From the IMG/VR virus record IMGVR_UViG_3300043411_000942, positions 124,001 to 188,000 of that record: a stretch of DNA of 64,000 bases. One strand, given 5' to 3'. The notes under the pieces are model-generated. The model saw nothing but the letters and a program-made list of their open reading frames with translations. It was not told the DNA's origin and did no database searches. The position numbers were made by a program, and so were the translations under genes. Position 1 is the stretch's first letter, and the number at the start of each line of letters is the position of its first letter. Below, in pieces: positions 8,672 through 40,486 of the stretch.

Positions 8672-8744
8672 CGGCATGTATATCAACGGTTAGATAGCTG
8701 CTCTGATAAAGCAGAGGTTGGAGGTTCAATTCCTCTCATGCCGA
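8672..8744 (+). tRNA. tRNA-Ile(GAT)
   Basis: CTGCT-CTGATAA-AGCAG. Confidence 0.9.
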
Positions 8745-8752
8745 CTTGTAAT

Positions 8753-12717: not shown

Positions 12718-13680
12718 ATGGGGTGGAGAGACTTGCTTCCAGAAAAAGAGGAGACTGTAATCTTCCCTTGGGTTGGAGGTAGGTCTCTTCGCTCCGGCTC
12801 TCGTACTTGGAAAATTCAAGGTGCGCTACCAGACGAGCATGGATGGTATGCGTTTCGGATAGTGGGGCGTAATGCCACTCTAGGTGGACCTAGTGGTCCC
12901 GTAGTTGGGATGCTCGATCCTTACAAGGATGTTGGTTACCTAGTAGGGGACCACTTTGTATCTGACTCAATCCAGGCTCAGAGTACTACTCAGGCGTTGC
13001 GCCAGATGAGCCCAGTGGGGCTAGTTGAGCCAGGACTAGATCGGTTCGCTAGGGTCTCCGTAGGGCGAGCGTTTGAGGGCGGCCCTCTTATCTACATGGG
13101 ACTAGAGTTCCCTTTGGGCCCGGAGGAGCAAGTCCTTCAAATGTTCCTAGACCAAGCTCCAACCGTTCGTGAAGTCAAAGGAGTTACTCCAGCGCTCGAA
13201 GCTGCCTTTCAAGTGGAAACTTGGCAACGTCTGGAAACAGAGAGGTTGCGAGTAGAAGCAAACGAGCGTCGCCGATTGGCGGAGGAGCAACGACGTAAGG
13301 AAGAGCAACGTCAACAGATTTTGAACCAGCTTGGGGACGCAGTTGGTCGCCGTCAAATGGCTCAACTCGACTTTGCAGAAGCTGCAAAAGCCTCCCTTGC
13401 GGTAGGGGGCGCTACTTACCTAGACCATCGTAGAGCCGTCACGAGAGGTGAGATGGTTGTAAGGTTCCGGTACATGGACCGTAGGTTCGAATGTGTGTGC
13501 GACGAGAAGACACTACAGATCATTGACTCTGGAGTGTGCCTTACTGCACACAATGATGATGATGGGTTTGACGAGGGAGTGAAAGGAGACCGTTTCTTTA
13601 CTCTTGAGTCCCTGCCATCCGTGTTGAAGGAAGCTCAGGATCTTGGCCGTCTTGTGGTGTATAGGCACGTAGATGGCTAA
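12718..13680 (+). CDS. conserved protein, possible E2-like C-terminal domain
   Basis: Coiled coil followed by IIDSGVCL...TLESLPSVL, reminiscent of the E2 GxxCL catalytic segment; lies in a Ubl operon. Confidence 0.5.
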   Translation: MGWRDLLPEKEETVIFPWVGGRSLRSGSRTWKIQGALPDEHGWYAFRIVGRNATLGGPSGPVVGMLDPYKDVGYLVGDHFVSDSIQAQSTTQALRQMSPVGLVEPGLDRFARVSVGRAFEGGPLIYMGLEFPLGPEEQVLQMFLDQAPTVREVKGVTPALEAAFQVETWQRLETERLRVEANERRRLAEEQRRKEEQRQQILNQLGDAVGRRQMAQLDFAEAAKASLAVGGATYLDHRRAVTRGEMVVRFRYMDRRFECVCDEKTLQIIDSGVCLTAHNDDDGFDEGVKGDRFFTLESLPSVLKEAQDLGRLVVYRHVDG

Positions 13681-17433: not shown

Positions 17434-17514
17434 GCGAACGTGGTGGAATGGCAGACACGCCAGACTAAGGATCTGGTGCCGTAAGGTGTGAGAGTTCAAG
17501 TCTCTCCGTTCGCA
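17434..17514 (+). tRNA. tRNA-Leu(AAG)
   Basis: GCGAACG/CGTTCGC-A, CCAGA-CTAAGGA-TCTGG, long variable arm. Confidence 0.92.
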
Positions 17515-17526
17515 CTAGGTGTTTCA

Positions 17527-18969: not shown

Positions 18970-19052
18970 GGTAGATGAATCAGTCGGGGACTGAACCGGT
19001 TTACTAAACCGAGGGACGGTAATACGTTGGGGTTCGAGCCCTCCATCTACCT
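18970..19052 (+). tRNA. tRNA-Ser(ACT), 8/4 fold
   Basis: GGTAGATG/CATCTACC, CGGT-TTACTAA-ACCG, long variable arm. Confidence 0.8.
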
Positions 19053-19062
19053 CTTGTGTTAT

Positions 19063-19138
19063 GGTGAGTGTACTCGTTTGGTAACGAGGGTTGTCTGTGA
19101 AACAACGGAAGCGGGTCCGATTCCCGTCACTCACCCCA
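19063..19138 (+). tRNA. tRNA-His(GTG)
   Basis: G-1:C73, GTTGT-CTGTGAA-ACAAC, CCA. Confidence 0.9.
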
Positions 19139-27687: not shown

Positions 27688-27770
27688 GGCCTAGTGAGGG
27701 TAATGGCAAATGGAACAGTCTGCGGATTTAAAATCCGTCCCTTTTGAGGGTTCAATTCCCTCCTGGGCTA
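27688..27770 (+). tRNA. atypical tRNA-Leu(TAA) with enlarged D region and short variable arm
   Basis: GGCCTAG/CTGGGCT, GCGGA-TTTAAAA-TCCGT. Confidence 0.7.
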
Positions 27771-27783
27771 CTGAGGTGAAAAA

Positions 27784-27990
27784 ATGAGTACGCGTTGGTA
27801 TAGAATGTTTGCGGCTGAGTTCATGGTGTCTGAAAGCGCTTCTGAAAGCGCTAGCTCGTCACGTCAGTGTGATATGTGCGATGAAGCAGATAATGACTAC
27901 TGCTTTAAGTGTGGTACTCCACACGGCACAATGCGTGATCTAGTTGAAGGGGAATGGTCGGACCAACTCGACAGGATGTACATGGGGTGA
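27784..27990 (+). CDS. small zinc-finger protein
   Basis: CDMC...CFKCG; GAGGT RBS. Confidence 0.6.
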   Translation: MSTRWYRMFAAEFMVSESASESASSSRQCDMCDEADNDYCFKCGTPHGTMRDLVEGEWSDQLDRMYMG

Positions 27991-27993
27991 GCT

Positions 27994-28167: not shown

Positions 28168-28258
28168 GGGACTGTAGCCTAACGGTTAAGGCACCCGGTT
28201 TATAACCGGTTTAGCGTCTGATAAGCGCGAGATGGGGGTTCAAATCCCTCCAGTCCTA
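28168..28258 (+). tRNA. tRNA-Ile(TAT) with extra arm
   Basis: CCGG-TTTATAA-CCGG; extra hairpin GCGT-CTGATAA-GCGC. Confidence 0.85.
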
Positions 28259-28389
28259 CTAAGGTGCAGGAATCCCCAAAGGGTTCCTCAGAAAGGTAAG
28301 CTGTAAACTTACCAGGTTGGAAGTAACCAAGCACCTCGATCCTTGACATAGTGTGACCTTAGACTGTACTTAACTTGTGTTTGAGAGAC

Positions 28390-28744
28390 GGGGTTGAAAT
28401 AGTTTCGACGTTGGAGAGAAGTAGTGCTTGCATGTAGGCGGTCCTTGACCCGCCTTGACCAATCAAGGAACGTTAATTGCGAACGATAACGCATACGCGA
28501 CTCCCGCTCTCGCAGCGGCTTGAGTAGCTGTCCTCCAGGGAGATCGTCCTGGTACCTGAACGGGGGCATCAATCACTAGGGCTGGTCGAAGAGCTGGGCT
28601 AACCGAGCACGAGATGAGATAAACAGGGTAGATAGGTCCTAGCCGAATCGAGGAACTCAGTTGACGGGGATACGTCAACCAATCATGTGGAAGAAGGCAC
28701 TTACGTATTTCTGGCGGACCCGAGTGCGATCCTCGGCAACTCCA
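28390..28744 (+). ncRNA. ssrA: tmRNA
   Basis: 5' GGGGTTGAAATAGTTTCGAC, 3' GGACCCGAG-TGCGATC-CTCGG-CAACTCC-A, G3:U70; tag 28479-28523 ANDNAYATPALAAA*. Confidence 0.93.
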
Positions 28745-28888
28745 CAGTAATCCCACCCGAAACGGTGGGGTTGAATTTGTAGCAGGCGGTTAAATTGGTT
28801 CGATACTTTTACGTAGAAGAGAGGGACTAGAAGTTCTAGCCCTCGAAAGAGGGTACGGACATGAGGAAGAGGCAAAGGTAGGTGTAAC

Positions 28889-30745: not shown

Positions 30746-32765
<2,020 letters not shown>

Positions 32766-32766
<1 letters not shown>

Positions 32767-37603: not shown

Positions 37604-40486
37604 ATGCCAAGCACTGAATCTACTGCACCTCAGACAAAATCCGAACGGCTAATCACCCGACGCTTCACTCAAGATGGAGTTCCTTGGGATTGTGTTTGGG
37701 AGAAGAGAGAGGCAAAGATCACGGACCCAGACGGTACCGTGGTTTTCCAGTCTGATGCTGAGGTGCCATCCACCTTCTCTCAGCTAGCTACAGATATCGC
37801 AGCTAGTAAGTACTTCCGCAAGGCTGGTGTTGCTGGGGGCGGAGAGGTGTCGTTCAAGCAGGTCGTGTACCGTATAGCTAATACGATACGCAAAGCTGGA
37901 GAGAGTAGGGGTTACTTTTCTGACCTTGAGGAGGCAAACGCTTTCGAGGCAGAGTTGTCCTACATGCTAACGACTCAAATGGGTGCGTTCAACTCGCCAG
38001 TATGGTTCAACTGTGGCCTATGGCAGCGGTATGGGATTAAGGGTGGGGCAGGTTTGTGGGCTTACAACGAAAGCTACAACCCAAGCCTTAACGGTCAAAA
38101 CGAGCACCCAGAGATCATGGGGATGGAGAATGCTTACGAGCGTCCCCAATCCTCAGCGTGCTTTATCCAGAGTGTGGATGACGACCTACGGAGCATCTAC
38201 GACCTAGCCAAGAATGAGGCAATGCTCTTCAAGTACGGGTCTGGTACAGGCTCAAACATGAGCTACCTTCGTAGTAAGTACGAGAAGTTGTCCGGAGGCG
38301 GACTATCTAGCGGTTTGATTAGCTTCCTAGAGATGCTTGACCGGGTAGCGGGCTCCACCAAGTCTGGTGGTACGACTAGGCGAGCTGCCGTTATGCGCTG
38401 CCTAGACATGGACCACCCTGAGATCGTGGACTTCATCGAGTGGAAGTCTAGGGAGGAAAAGAAGGCTAAGGCTCTTATTGCTGCTGGTTGGCCTAGTGAC
38501 TTCAACGGGGAGGCCTATCGAACCGTATCAGGTCAAAACTCAAACAACTCTGTTCGGGTTACTGACGAGTTCATGCGTAACGTTCAATCGGACGGTGACT
38601 GGTCTACTGTGAGTCGTACTACTGGAGAGGTTTTACACACCTACAAGGCTAGAGACTTGTGGAGTAAGATTGCTGAGGCGGCTTGGCAGTGTGCAGACCC
38701 AGGATTGCAGTTCGACACCACCATCAACGAGTGGCATACTTGCTCAAATACAGCGAAGATTAGGGCAAGTAACCCCTGCTCTGAGTTCATGTTCCTTGAC
38801 GAGTCAGCTTGCAACCTGGCCAGCCTAAATCTGACCAAGTTCTTGCAGGATGATGGGACATTTGATGTCGAGGCTTACCGCCACGCTATCCGAGTGTTTC
38901 TACTGGCTCAAGAGATCCTGGTAGACTTCTCGTCTTACCCAACAGAGCGTCTTTGTAAGACGAGTCATGACTATAGGCCTCTAGGTCTGGGGTACGCTAA
39001 CCTAGGCACGTTATTGATGGTATCTGGTATCCCTTACGACTCAGATAAGGGTCGAGCTATCGCAGGGTCTTTGACGGCCATACTCACGGGTCATGCCTAC
39101 AAGGTAAGCGCTCAGATTGCTGCTAAGCGAGGCCCCTTCGCTGGCTACCTTAAGAACAAGGAGCCCATGCTCCAGGTTATTGGTAAGCATCGCTCAGCAG
39201 TGGCAGCCATCAACGATGGACTCACTGGAGTTCTTTTCTCTGAACGGGCGCCAAACTACTTGATCCAAGCAGCCCAGCAAGACTGGGATGATGCCCTACG
39301 GCTAGGGGAGCAGTTCGGTTATCGGAACTCTCAGACCACTGTTCTTGCCCCTACAGGGACAATCGGGCTGTTGATGGATTGCGATACCACGGGCATCGAA
39401 CCCGACTTCTCGCTGGTGAAGTACAAGAAGCTGGCGGGTGGGGGTACGATCAAGATCGTAAACCAGTCCGTCACTAAAGCCCTCAAGAACTTGAAGTTCA
39501 GTGAGGACGATATTCGGTCGGTACTCGCCTACGTAGAGCAGTACGATACGGTTGAAGGTTGCCCGCTTATTACTCCGAGCATGCTTCCAATCTTCGACTG
39601 TGCGAATAGGTGTGGAAAGAATGGTACAAGGTACCTAGCTCCGATGTCGCATGTGCTCATGATGGCTGCGGCTCAACCGTTCCTATCGGGAGCAATTAGC
39701 AAGACAGTCAACCTGCCCAACGAGTCTACGGTCGAGGAAATTAAGGACATTTACGAGCGTAGTTGGAGTCTAGGTCTGAAGGCCGTTGCGTTGTATCGCG
39801 ATGGTTGCAAGTCCAGTCAACCTCTGAACTCCCAGGCAGACAAGACTAAGGAAGTCGAGGTAGCTCCTAGCAAGCCTTCAGAGGTGGCCGTCAAGACTCC
39901 AGAGGTGAAAGCCAAGGAGCCTGCTCAGAGGCCTACAGGGTCAAGGGTGCGGCTACCTACACGCAGGTCTGGGATAACCCAGGAGGCCAGGGTTGGTGGT
40001 CACAAGGTGTTCCTACGCACTGGAGAGTACGAGGATGGTTCGATAGGTGAGATCTTCATCGACATGCACAAGGAAGGAGCCACCTTCCGTAGCATCATGA
40101 ATTGCCTAGCCATGTCTGTAAGTCTGGGGCTACAGCATGGGGTGCCTCTAGCGTCCTATGTGAGGCAGTTCACCTTCACTAAGTTTGAGCCGTCTGGCCC
40201 AGTCCTTGGACACGCTAAGGTGAAGCTGGCAACAAGTGTTGTTGACTATGTCTTTCGAAGCTTGGCTGTTGAGTACCTAGGTCGTGAGGACTTAGCTCAC
40301 GTCAAGTCCGAGGCTTATGCTGACGAAACCCCCAAGGGACCTTTGACCGAGTCAATCTCAGCTGACCAGCACCATGCGGAGATGATGGGGGACGCTCCTG
40401 CTTGTGACGGTTGTGGGCACATTACAGTCCGCAATGGTACCTGCTATAGGTGCTTGAATTGCGGGAATAGTATGGGATGCTCCTAA
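37604..40486 (+). CDS. nrdJ: class II (B12-dependent) ribonucleotide reductase
   Basis: FNSPVWFN, SACFI, SNPCSE, APTGT, YRDG, C-terminal CxxC..CLNCGNSMGCS. Confidence 0.95.
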   Translation: MPSTESTAPQTKSERLITRRFTQDGVPWDCVWEKREAKITDPDGTVVFQSDAEVPSTFSQLATDIAASKYFRKAGVAGGGEVSFKQVVYRIANTIRKAGESRGYFSDLEEANAFEAELSYMLTTQMGAFNSPVWFNCGLWQRYGIKGGAGLWAYNESYNPSLNGQNEHPEIMGMENAYERPQSSACFIQSVDDDLRSIYDLAKNEAMLFKYGSGTGSNMSYLRSKYEKLSGGGLSSGLISFLEMLDRVAGSTKSGGTTRRAAVMRCLDMDHPEIVDFIEWKSREEKKAKALIAAGWPSDFNGEAYRTVSGQNSNNSVRVTDEFMRNVQSDGDWSTVSRTTGEVLHTYKARDLWSKIAEAAWQCADPGLQFDTTINEWHTCSNTAKIRASNPCSEFMFLDESACNLASLNLTKFLQDDGTFDVEAYRHAIRVFLLAQEILVDFSSYPTERLCKTSHDYRPLGLGYANLGTLLMVSGIPYDSDKGRAIAGSLTAILTGHAYKVSAQIAAKRGPFAGYLKNKEPMLQVIGKHRSAVAAINDGLTGVLFSERAPNYLIQAAQQDWDDALRLGEQFGYRNSQTTVLAPTGTIGLLMDCDTTGIEPDFSLVKYKKLAGGGTIKIVNQSVTKALKNLKFSEDDIRSVLAYVEQYDTVEGCPLITPSMLPIFDCANRCGKNGTRYLAPMSHVLMMAAAQPFLSGAISKTVNLPNESTVEEIKDIYERSWSLGLKAVALYRDGCKSSQPLNSQADKTKEVEVAPSKPSEVAVKTPEVKAKEPAQRPTGSRVRLPTRRSGITQEARVGGHKVFLRTGEYEDGSIGEIFIDMHKEGATFRSIMNCLAMSVSLGLQHGVPLASYVRQFTFTKFEPSGPVLGHAKVKLATSVVDYVFRSLAVEYLGREDLAHVKSEAYADETPKGPLTESISADQHHAEMMGDAPACDGCGHITVRNGTCYRCLNCGNSMGCS

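Follow-up and report, generated by a model that had tools for sequence, protein, structure and literature searches.

The window analyzed here is a 64,000-nucleotide stretch covering bases 124001–188000 of a 232,937-base IMG/VR virus record (IMGVR_UViG_3300043411_000942), which CheckV estimates to be 49% complete and which is therefore part of a very large phage. A near-identical 380-kb contig exists, and it was the only locus returned by a search for related loci with the class II ribonucleotide reductase (RNR). The phage is seen in freshwater, groundwater, and wastewater metagenomes. The window carries 46 ARAGORN tRNA genes and a tmRNA, all on the + strand. The last tRNA of this array lies 130 bases before the tmRNA. 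It has a UAU anticodon, which reads the rare isoleucine codon AUA, and a second hairpin that displays GAU (Table 1).

Table 1. Coordinates of the tRNA(UAU) gene, its parts, and other features. Positions are those of the window unless a locus is named; L numbers denote individual loci.
Position	Strand	Feature	Observations
28168–28258	+	tRNA(UAU) gene, 91 nt from G1 to A73	CCA is not encoded
28168–28174	+	Acceptor stem, 5' strand GGGACUG	Pairs with 28251–28257 (G1-U72 wobble); helix 97.5% paired, with covariation in all 7 pairs across 58 relatives
28177–28192	+	D arm, 4-bp stem GCCU/AGGC with loop AACGGUUA	Class-I type
28194–28210	+	First (decoding) anticodon arm, stem CCCGG/CCGGU	Loop UUUAUAA at 28199–28205; anticodon UAU at 28201–28203; U33 and A37
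28211–28213	+	5' linker UUA between the two arms	2 nt in most relatives
28214–28228	+	Second, anticodon-arm-like hairpin, 4-bp stem GCGU/GCGC	7-nt loop CUGAUAA; GAU at 28220–28222
28229–28233	+	3' linker GAGAU	Length of a class-I variable loop; last base fits the 15-48 Levitt pair (A15-U48)
28234–28250	+	T arm, GGGGG, loop UUCAAAU, CCCUC
28251–28258	+	Acceptor 3' strand CAGUCCU plus discriminator A73
8672–8745	+	Ordinary tRNA-Ile(GAU) of the phage	Anticodon loop CUGAUAA, identical to the extra loop
22541–22615	+	tRNA(CAU), probably the lysidine-type tRNA-Ile2 and the nearest paralogue, inferred from sequence comparison only	Shares the acceptor ends (GGGAC.../...GUCCUAC, G1-U72, A73) and anticodon stem CCCGG with tRNA(UAU)
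28390–28747	+	tmRNA with tag ANDNAYATPALAAA, closing the 46-gene tRNA array	Most strongly represented part of the stretch in RNA libraries (runs X15, X16, and X17)
19064–19135		tRNA, reads as tRNA-His(GUG)	Rfam 49.7 bits; anticodon loop CUGUGAA; missed by ARAGORN
27688–27770		Weak tRNA match (32.4 bits), anticodon UAA (Leu)	Anticodon loop UUUAAAA; 24-nt D region; no long variable arm
27777–27992		Segment replaced by 8 bases in the strain variant of run X15	Just downstream of the weak match at 27688–27770
13068–13147, 17434–17515, 18970–19053		tRNA genes Ser(AGA), Leu(AAG), and Ser(ACU)	A at the wobble position outside Arg, unusual for bacterial-type tRNA sets
31129–32766		545-aa ORF	Counterparts in relatives L417 and L423 carry a Cpn60/GroEL-type chaperonin domain (PF00118)
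37604–40483		Class II (B12-dependent) RNR	Nearest named cellular homologues (63–67% identity) from Polyangiaceae and other Myxococcota, which may hint at the host
G000:C1:190390–193749 (just past the window end; locus L414)		1119-aa ORF with intein splicing and LAGLIDADG endonuclease domains	12 AUA codons, the most of any ORF in the record
L324 7871–7962		Long tRNA(UAU) without GAU	Extra loop reads GGACG(A), that is GAC, one transition from GAU; may be a decaying copy or a variant
L321 1357–1438, L383 1608–1687		tRNA(UAU) genes of 80–82 nt	Variable arm with a GAAA tetraloop and no GAU; a third form beside the short and GAU-arm types

The gene is a tRNA by several criteria. ARAGORN calls tRNA-Ile(tat) at 28168–28259, and the Rfam tRNA model (RF00005) scores 61.1 bits, against a gathering score of 29, with a 20-nt insertion in the variable region. 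The minimum free energy fold gives the cloverleaf plus the extra hairpin at −34.5 kcal/mol (z = −2.9). A sequence-only reading of this DNA had described the UAU loop, the extra arm, and the identity of its loop with the tRNA-Ile(GAU) anticodon loop, and this description proved exact. An exact 7-nt loop match has a chance of about 6e-5, but the decisive evidence against chance is comparative.

Three scans, each blind to a different part of the molecule, were used to collect relatives from viral contigs. The first demanded TTTATAA, then 22–38 bases, then a T-loop consensus, with no demand on the extra loop; it returned at least 118 loci, which yielded 20 distinct tRNA(UAU) genes of 88–95 nt, all 20 with a hairpin bearing GAU in its loop. 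The second demanded CAGATTA, then 11–15 bases, then the T loop, with no demand on the first arm. It gave 117 distinct hits, and all but four chance hits are tRNAs of about 90 nt whose first loop is YU-UAU-RN. The third demanded CTTATAA, then 8–38 bases, then the T loop, with any arm length allowed. In new loci it gave 57 short and 15 long tRNA(UAU) genes (14 distinct long sequences), and about 16 further loci were re-listed long ones, so that roughly a third of the sampled phage tRNA(UAU) genes carry the arm. Of the 15 new long genes, 14 have GAU and one, at locus L324, has GAC. The first and third scans together returned 31 distinct long tRNA(UAU) genes, 30 with GAU at the center of the extra loop and one with GAC. 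A Levilactobacillus phage homologue found by BLAST alone, and so free of any pattern bias, has loops UUUAUAC and CAGAUGG.

Pooled over all loci, there are 173 distinct long sequences, falling into 40 clusters at 70% identity. Of these, 172 carry GAU, 168 with a GAU-centered 7-nt loop closed by at least 3 bp and four more with a weaker stem, and one has GAC. The discriminator A73, as in bacterial tRNA-Ile, is present in 171 of the 173. In a MAFFT alignment of 58 representatives under 88% identical, the only invariant columns are U33-U34-A35-U36, the GAU of the extra loop, and the T loop. On this alignment the four pairs of the extra stem show 24, 3, 27, and 12 double (compensatory) changes, and the whole structure is 92% paired, against 58% in shuffles and at most 47% when partners are slid. 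A fifth pair flanking the stem is mostly a mismatch.

The extra arm is unlike a Leu/Ser/Tyr variable arm. In 197 Leu, Ser, and Tyr tRNAs of the same loci, the variable arm has a loop of 3–5 nt (mostly 4), a 5' linker of about 1 nt (0–2 nt), a 3' linker of 1–3 nt, and a whole variable region of 13–20 nt. The extra arm of the UAU family has a 7-nt loop, a stem of 4–5 bp, a 5' linker of 2–3 nt (2 nt in most members), a 3' linker of 5–6 nt in 149 of 173 relatives (5 nt in 94 and 6 nt in 55), and a variable region of 23–25 nt. The last linker base pairs in the Levitt manner with position 15, as A-U in 89 sequences and G-C in 13. The hairpin is therefore built and placed like an anticodon arm followed by a class-I variable loop, and the molecule is best described as a tRNA with two anticodon-type arms in tandem. 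The first arm is fit for decoding, with U33 and a purine at 37, whereas the second usually is not. Its commonest loop is CAGAUUA, and others are UAGAUGA, CCGAUUA, and UAGAUCG; CUGAUAA occurs only in this phage and a few others, so that only GAU, not the whole anticodon loop, is the conserved signal. The gene does not fit an intron-containing tRNA gene, as the insertion lies after the closed anticodon arm and is only about 20 nt. Contigs from RNA libraries keep the arm intact, although they are assembled contigs spanning several genes that could be precursor RNA or carried-over DNA, and they show neither a mature tRNA nor excision. A recent duplication as the origin of the arm was rejected because the stems of the two arms and of the phage's tRNA-Ile(GAU) share no similarity.

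The meaning of AUA was examined by aligning the phage's ORFs to syntenic relatives reached through the RNR gene. In pairs below 85% amino acid identity, 45 AUA codons align with ATC 13 times, ATT 7 times, and ATA once, which is Ile in 47% of cases; Leu accounts for 20%, Val for 13%, and Met for 11%. In the controls, AUU/AUC codons align with Ile in 55% of cases, and Leu codons align with Ile in 5% and with Leu in 65%. AUA therefore means isoleucine in this phage, where it makes up 5.0 per 1000 codons and 12% of Ile codons. A relative at 71% identity on a 363-kb contig (L417/L418) has the tRNA array but no tRNA(UAU) after Val(UAC), so no mid-distance orthologue of this particular gene was found. 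The only variant is the strain in L423 and run X15, which has four changes in the anticodon arm and none in the extra arm. The phage may carry three Ile isoacceptors (GAU, CAU, and UAU). Neither a class-Ia synthetase domain (PF00133) nor a TilS-type domain (PF01171) was found in the 233-kb record, which is an estimated 49% complete, although a phage-encoded IleRS or TilS cannot be excluded.

Members of the family occur in cultured Synechococcus phages S-SRM01 and S-SKS1 and in Lactobacillus phages LpeD and Lpa804, where they are unannotated, and in ENFP1 and 3-521, where they are annotated as tRNA-Ile. Among cellular genomes sampled at one per species, a pattern scan found 78 places. Most are in Pyrinomonadaceae and other Blastocatellia, inside arrays of 20–27 tRNA genes, or in many Ruegeria species as a single gene, with scattered others. 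All five cellular carriers tested (two Ruegeria and three Pyrinomonadaceae chromosomes) have TilS above the curated cut-off, indicating that the tRNA is an accessory decoder in TilS-type cells rather than a replacement in TilS-less ones. Their IleRS is accordingly expected to be of the type that recognizes UAU poorly.

The best-supported explanation, held with moderate confidence, is that the GAU hairpin is a surrogate anticodon for IleRS. Bacterial IleRS identity rests on the anticodon (G34 or lysidine-34, A35, U36), t6A37, A73, and a few stem pairs (PMC9976931). E. coli IleRS has a 360-fold lower kcat/Km for tRNA-Ile2 with UAU than with LAU, a single W905R change relieves this, and the Trp is conserved in species that have tilS (PMC3575796). 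A phage that brings a UAU tRNA, whose anticodon TilS cannot modify, into such a host therefore has a charging problem. In this view, the hairpin would give the tRNA isoleucine identity for the host IleRS, and the phage would supply an AUA decoder needing neither TilS nor an adapted IleRS. The exclusive two-way association of GAU with UAU is what a surrogate identity element predicts. The sequence-only reading had proposed that the arm could be a charging handle or a nuclease decoy allowing TilS-independent AUA decoding, and had named lack of conservation of the extra loop as the outcome that would count against it; the loop proved strongly conserved. That interpretation is only partly supported: the conservation fits a charging handle, the decoy has no support, and TilS-independent decoding is plausible for the tRNA itself but does not imply TilS-less hosts. 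The analysis itself establishes the structure, the conservation of GAU, its exclusive two-way link with UAU, the covariation of the stem, the non-class-II geometry, and the meaning of AUA. That the tRNA is charged with isoleucine, that IleRS binds and reads GAU, that charging depends on it, and how the enzyme reaches that loop are inferred from sequence comparison and published kinetics.

Several features do not sit easily with this explanation. A variable-arm position is far from where IleRS holds the anticodon, so either the enzyme binds differently or the tRNA must re-stack. In most members the loop is CAGAUUA, with A33 and U37; it therefore lacks A37, and so cannot carry t6A, and sometimes lacks A38, which are determinants for E. 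coli IleRS. About two thirds of the phage tRNA(UAU) genes sampled have no such arm, so the arm is not indispensable for every UAU tRNA. Lactobacillus phages carry the arm, although a study of recognition of a UAU anticodon by IleRS in lactic acid bacteria is reported by its title (Uesugi 2022).

A more speculative possibility, unlikely on present evidence, is a two-state tRNA. In one coaxial-stacking state, the GAU arm, followed by its 5-nt variable-loop-like linker, would sit under the D stem and present GAU to IleRS for charging; in the other, the UAU arm would take that place and the GAU arm would swing out like a class II variable arm, so that the ribosome reads AUA. Identity and decoding would then be physically split between two arms of one tRNA. 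The class-I-like linker makes this geometrically conceivable, but the bases flanking the two arms (26/44-like positions) gave no clear signal as to which arm stacks on the D stem.

Among the alternatives, the least unlikely is that the extra hairpin is a structural or processing element, such as a fold stabilizer or a handle for a modification or maturation enzyme, with GAU conserved for a reason unrelated to IleRS. Other phage tRNAs with class-I anticodons also carry extra variable-arm hairpins, so extra arms as such are common in phage tRNAs, and positions 33 and 37 of the extra loop are not anticodon-like in most members. However, those other arms have tetraloops rather than 7-nt loops, the GAU arm occurs only on UAU tRNAs, and a triplet conserved for an unrelated reason would match the Ile anticodon with a chance of about 1/64. 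A decoy or shield against a host or competitor nuclease that cuts the anticodon loop of tRNA-Ile(GAU) is very unlikely. Phage tRNAs are known to counter anticodon nucleases, and the loop in the window is an exact copy of a tRNA-Ile(GAU) anticodon loop, but a decoy has no reason to be tied to the UAU anticodon, yet the link is exclusive, and most members carry a poor copy of a real anticodon loop. The family also spans phages of cyanobacteria and Firmicutes as well as Proteobacteria and Acidobacteria genomes, which argues for a universal partner.

Charging by LeuRS, SerRS, or TyrRS, with AUA recoded or mistranslated, is also very unlikely. Nematode nev-tRNA-Ile(UAU) is a class II tRNA charged with Leu (PMC3333845, PMC4300185), UAU is a predominant anticodon among allo-tRNAs (PMC5389517), and A73 also suits LeuRS. 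Against this, AUA positions behave as Ile rather than Leu or Ser, and a Leu- or Ser-charged UAU tRNA would be harmful; the acceptor/T branch is 7/5, with both stems covarying, not 8/4 or 9/3; the D arm is class-I type with a 4-bp stem; the arm geometry differs from Leu/Ser/Tyr arms; and G73, typical of Ser, is absent. That GAU is instead the real anticodon, reading AUC/AUU, with the UAU hairpin as the insert, is suggested by the 5-nt class-I-like linker and by the fully canonical loop in the window, but is very unlikely because about 90% of members have A33 or C33 and U37, G37, or C37 in the GAU loop, which is incompatible with decoding, while the UAU loop always has U33 and a purine at 37 and the phage already has a normal tRNA-Ile(GAU).

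TilS-independent AUA decoding by tRNA-Ile(UAU) is known from Mycoplasma mobile, Bifidobacterium, and Neorickettsia (PMC3575796, PMC8450103). Those are ordinary tRNAs with a 5-nt variable loop, and the charging problem is solved on the enzyme side, by Arg865 in M. mobile IleRS or by a eukaryote-type IleRS; here the hosts keep TilS and the proposed adaptation is in the tRNA. Proof of principle comes from an engineered pseudo-anticodon arm in the variable arm of allo-tRNA (Mukai 2020, PMC7590224), where a copy of the anticodon stem-loop recruits an anticodon-binding domain and enhances histidylation. That system is synthetic, uses HisRS with an extra fused binding domain, and has a modest effect, whereas the present family is natural, widespread, and presumably uses unmodified host IleRS; like the engineered arm, its hairpin copies the cognate anticodon. 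Class II tRNAs share an extra hairpin between the anticodon and T arms, which the ribosome tolerates, but differ in the loop, linker, and D arm as described above. Nev-tRNAs and allo-tRNA(UAU) also combine a UAU anticodon with a long variable arm, but nev-tRNAs are eukaryotic and charged with Leu, while allo-tRNAs (Mukai 2017) have 8/4 or 9/3 branches and mostly G73 or U73, and the allo-tRNA(UAU) variants tested were inactive; neither has a reported GAU loop. Synthetases also read hairpins that copy their tRNA's anticodon arm in the E. coli thrS operator and in plant-virus tRNA-like structures (PMC9976931), but those mimics sit in mRNAs or viral genomes and act in regulation or 3'-end charging, not as a second arm inside a decoding tRNA. 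Full-text literature searches found no description of a GAU-bearing extra arm in tRNA(UAU) and no published "two-anticodon" tRNAs, although coverage of subscription journals was thin and an earlier description cannot be excluded.

tRNA identity for most synthetases is tied to the anticodon, which is why anticodons cannot change freely. A natural tRNA that keeps the old anticodon on a spare hairpin for the synthetase while decoding with a new one would be a simple and widespread way to uncouple charging from decoding. It would explain how phages can bring an AUA decoder into any TilS-type host without needing lysidine, and it would offer a ready-made natural design for sense-codon reassignment and orthogonal tRNAs. 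It would also correct the annotation of several cultured phages; the Synechococcus and Lactobacillus phages named above and Ruegeria isolates are cultured systems in which the idea is directly testable.

Two further observations concern related tRNAs. An almost identical arm-bearing tRNA(UAU), with an unusual D arm (AGCAUUGGUAUGC), is conserved as a single gene across many Ruegeria species (L233, L238, L239, and about 15 further Ruegeria loci), and Ruegeria profundi has two copies on one contig. The phage tRNAs with class-I anticodons that carry a tetraloop-capped variable-arm hairpin include those for Trp, Gly, Glu, Pro, Thr, and Cys (viral contigs L142, L160, L173, L195, L206, L332, and others) and represent a separate, unexplained habit of phage tRNAs.
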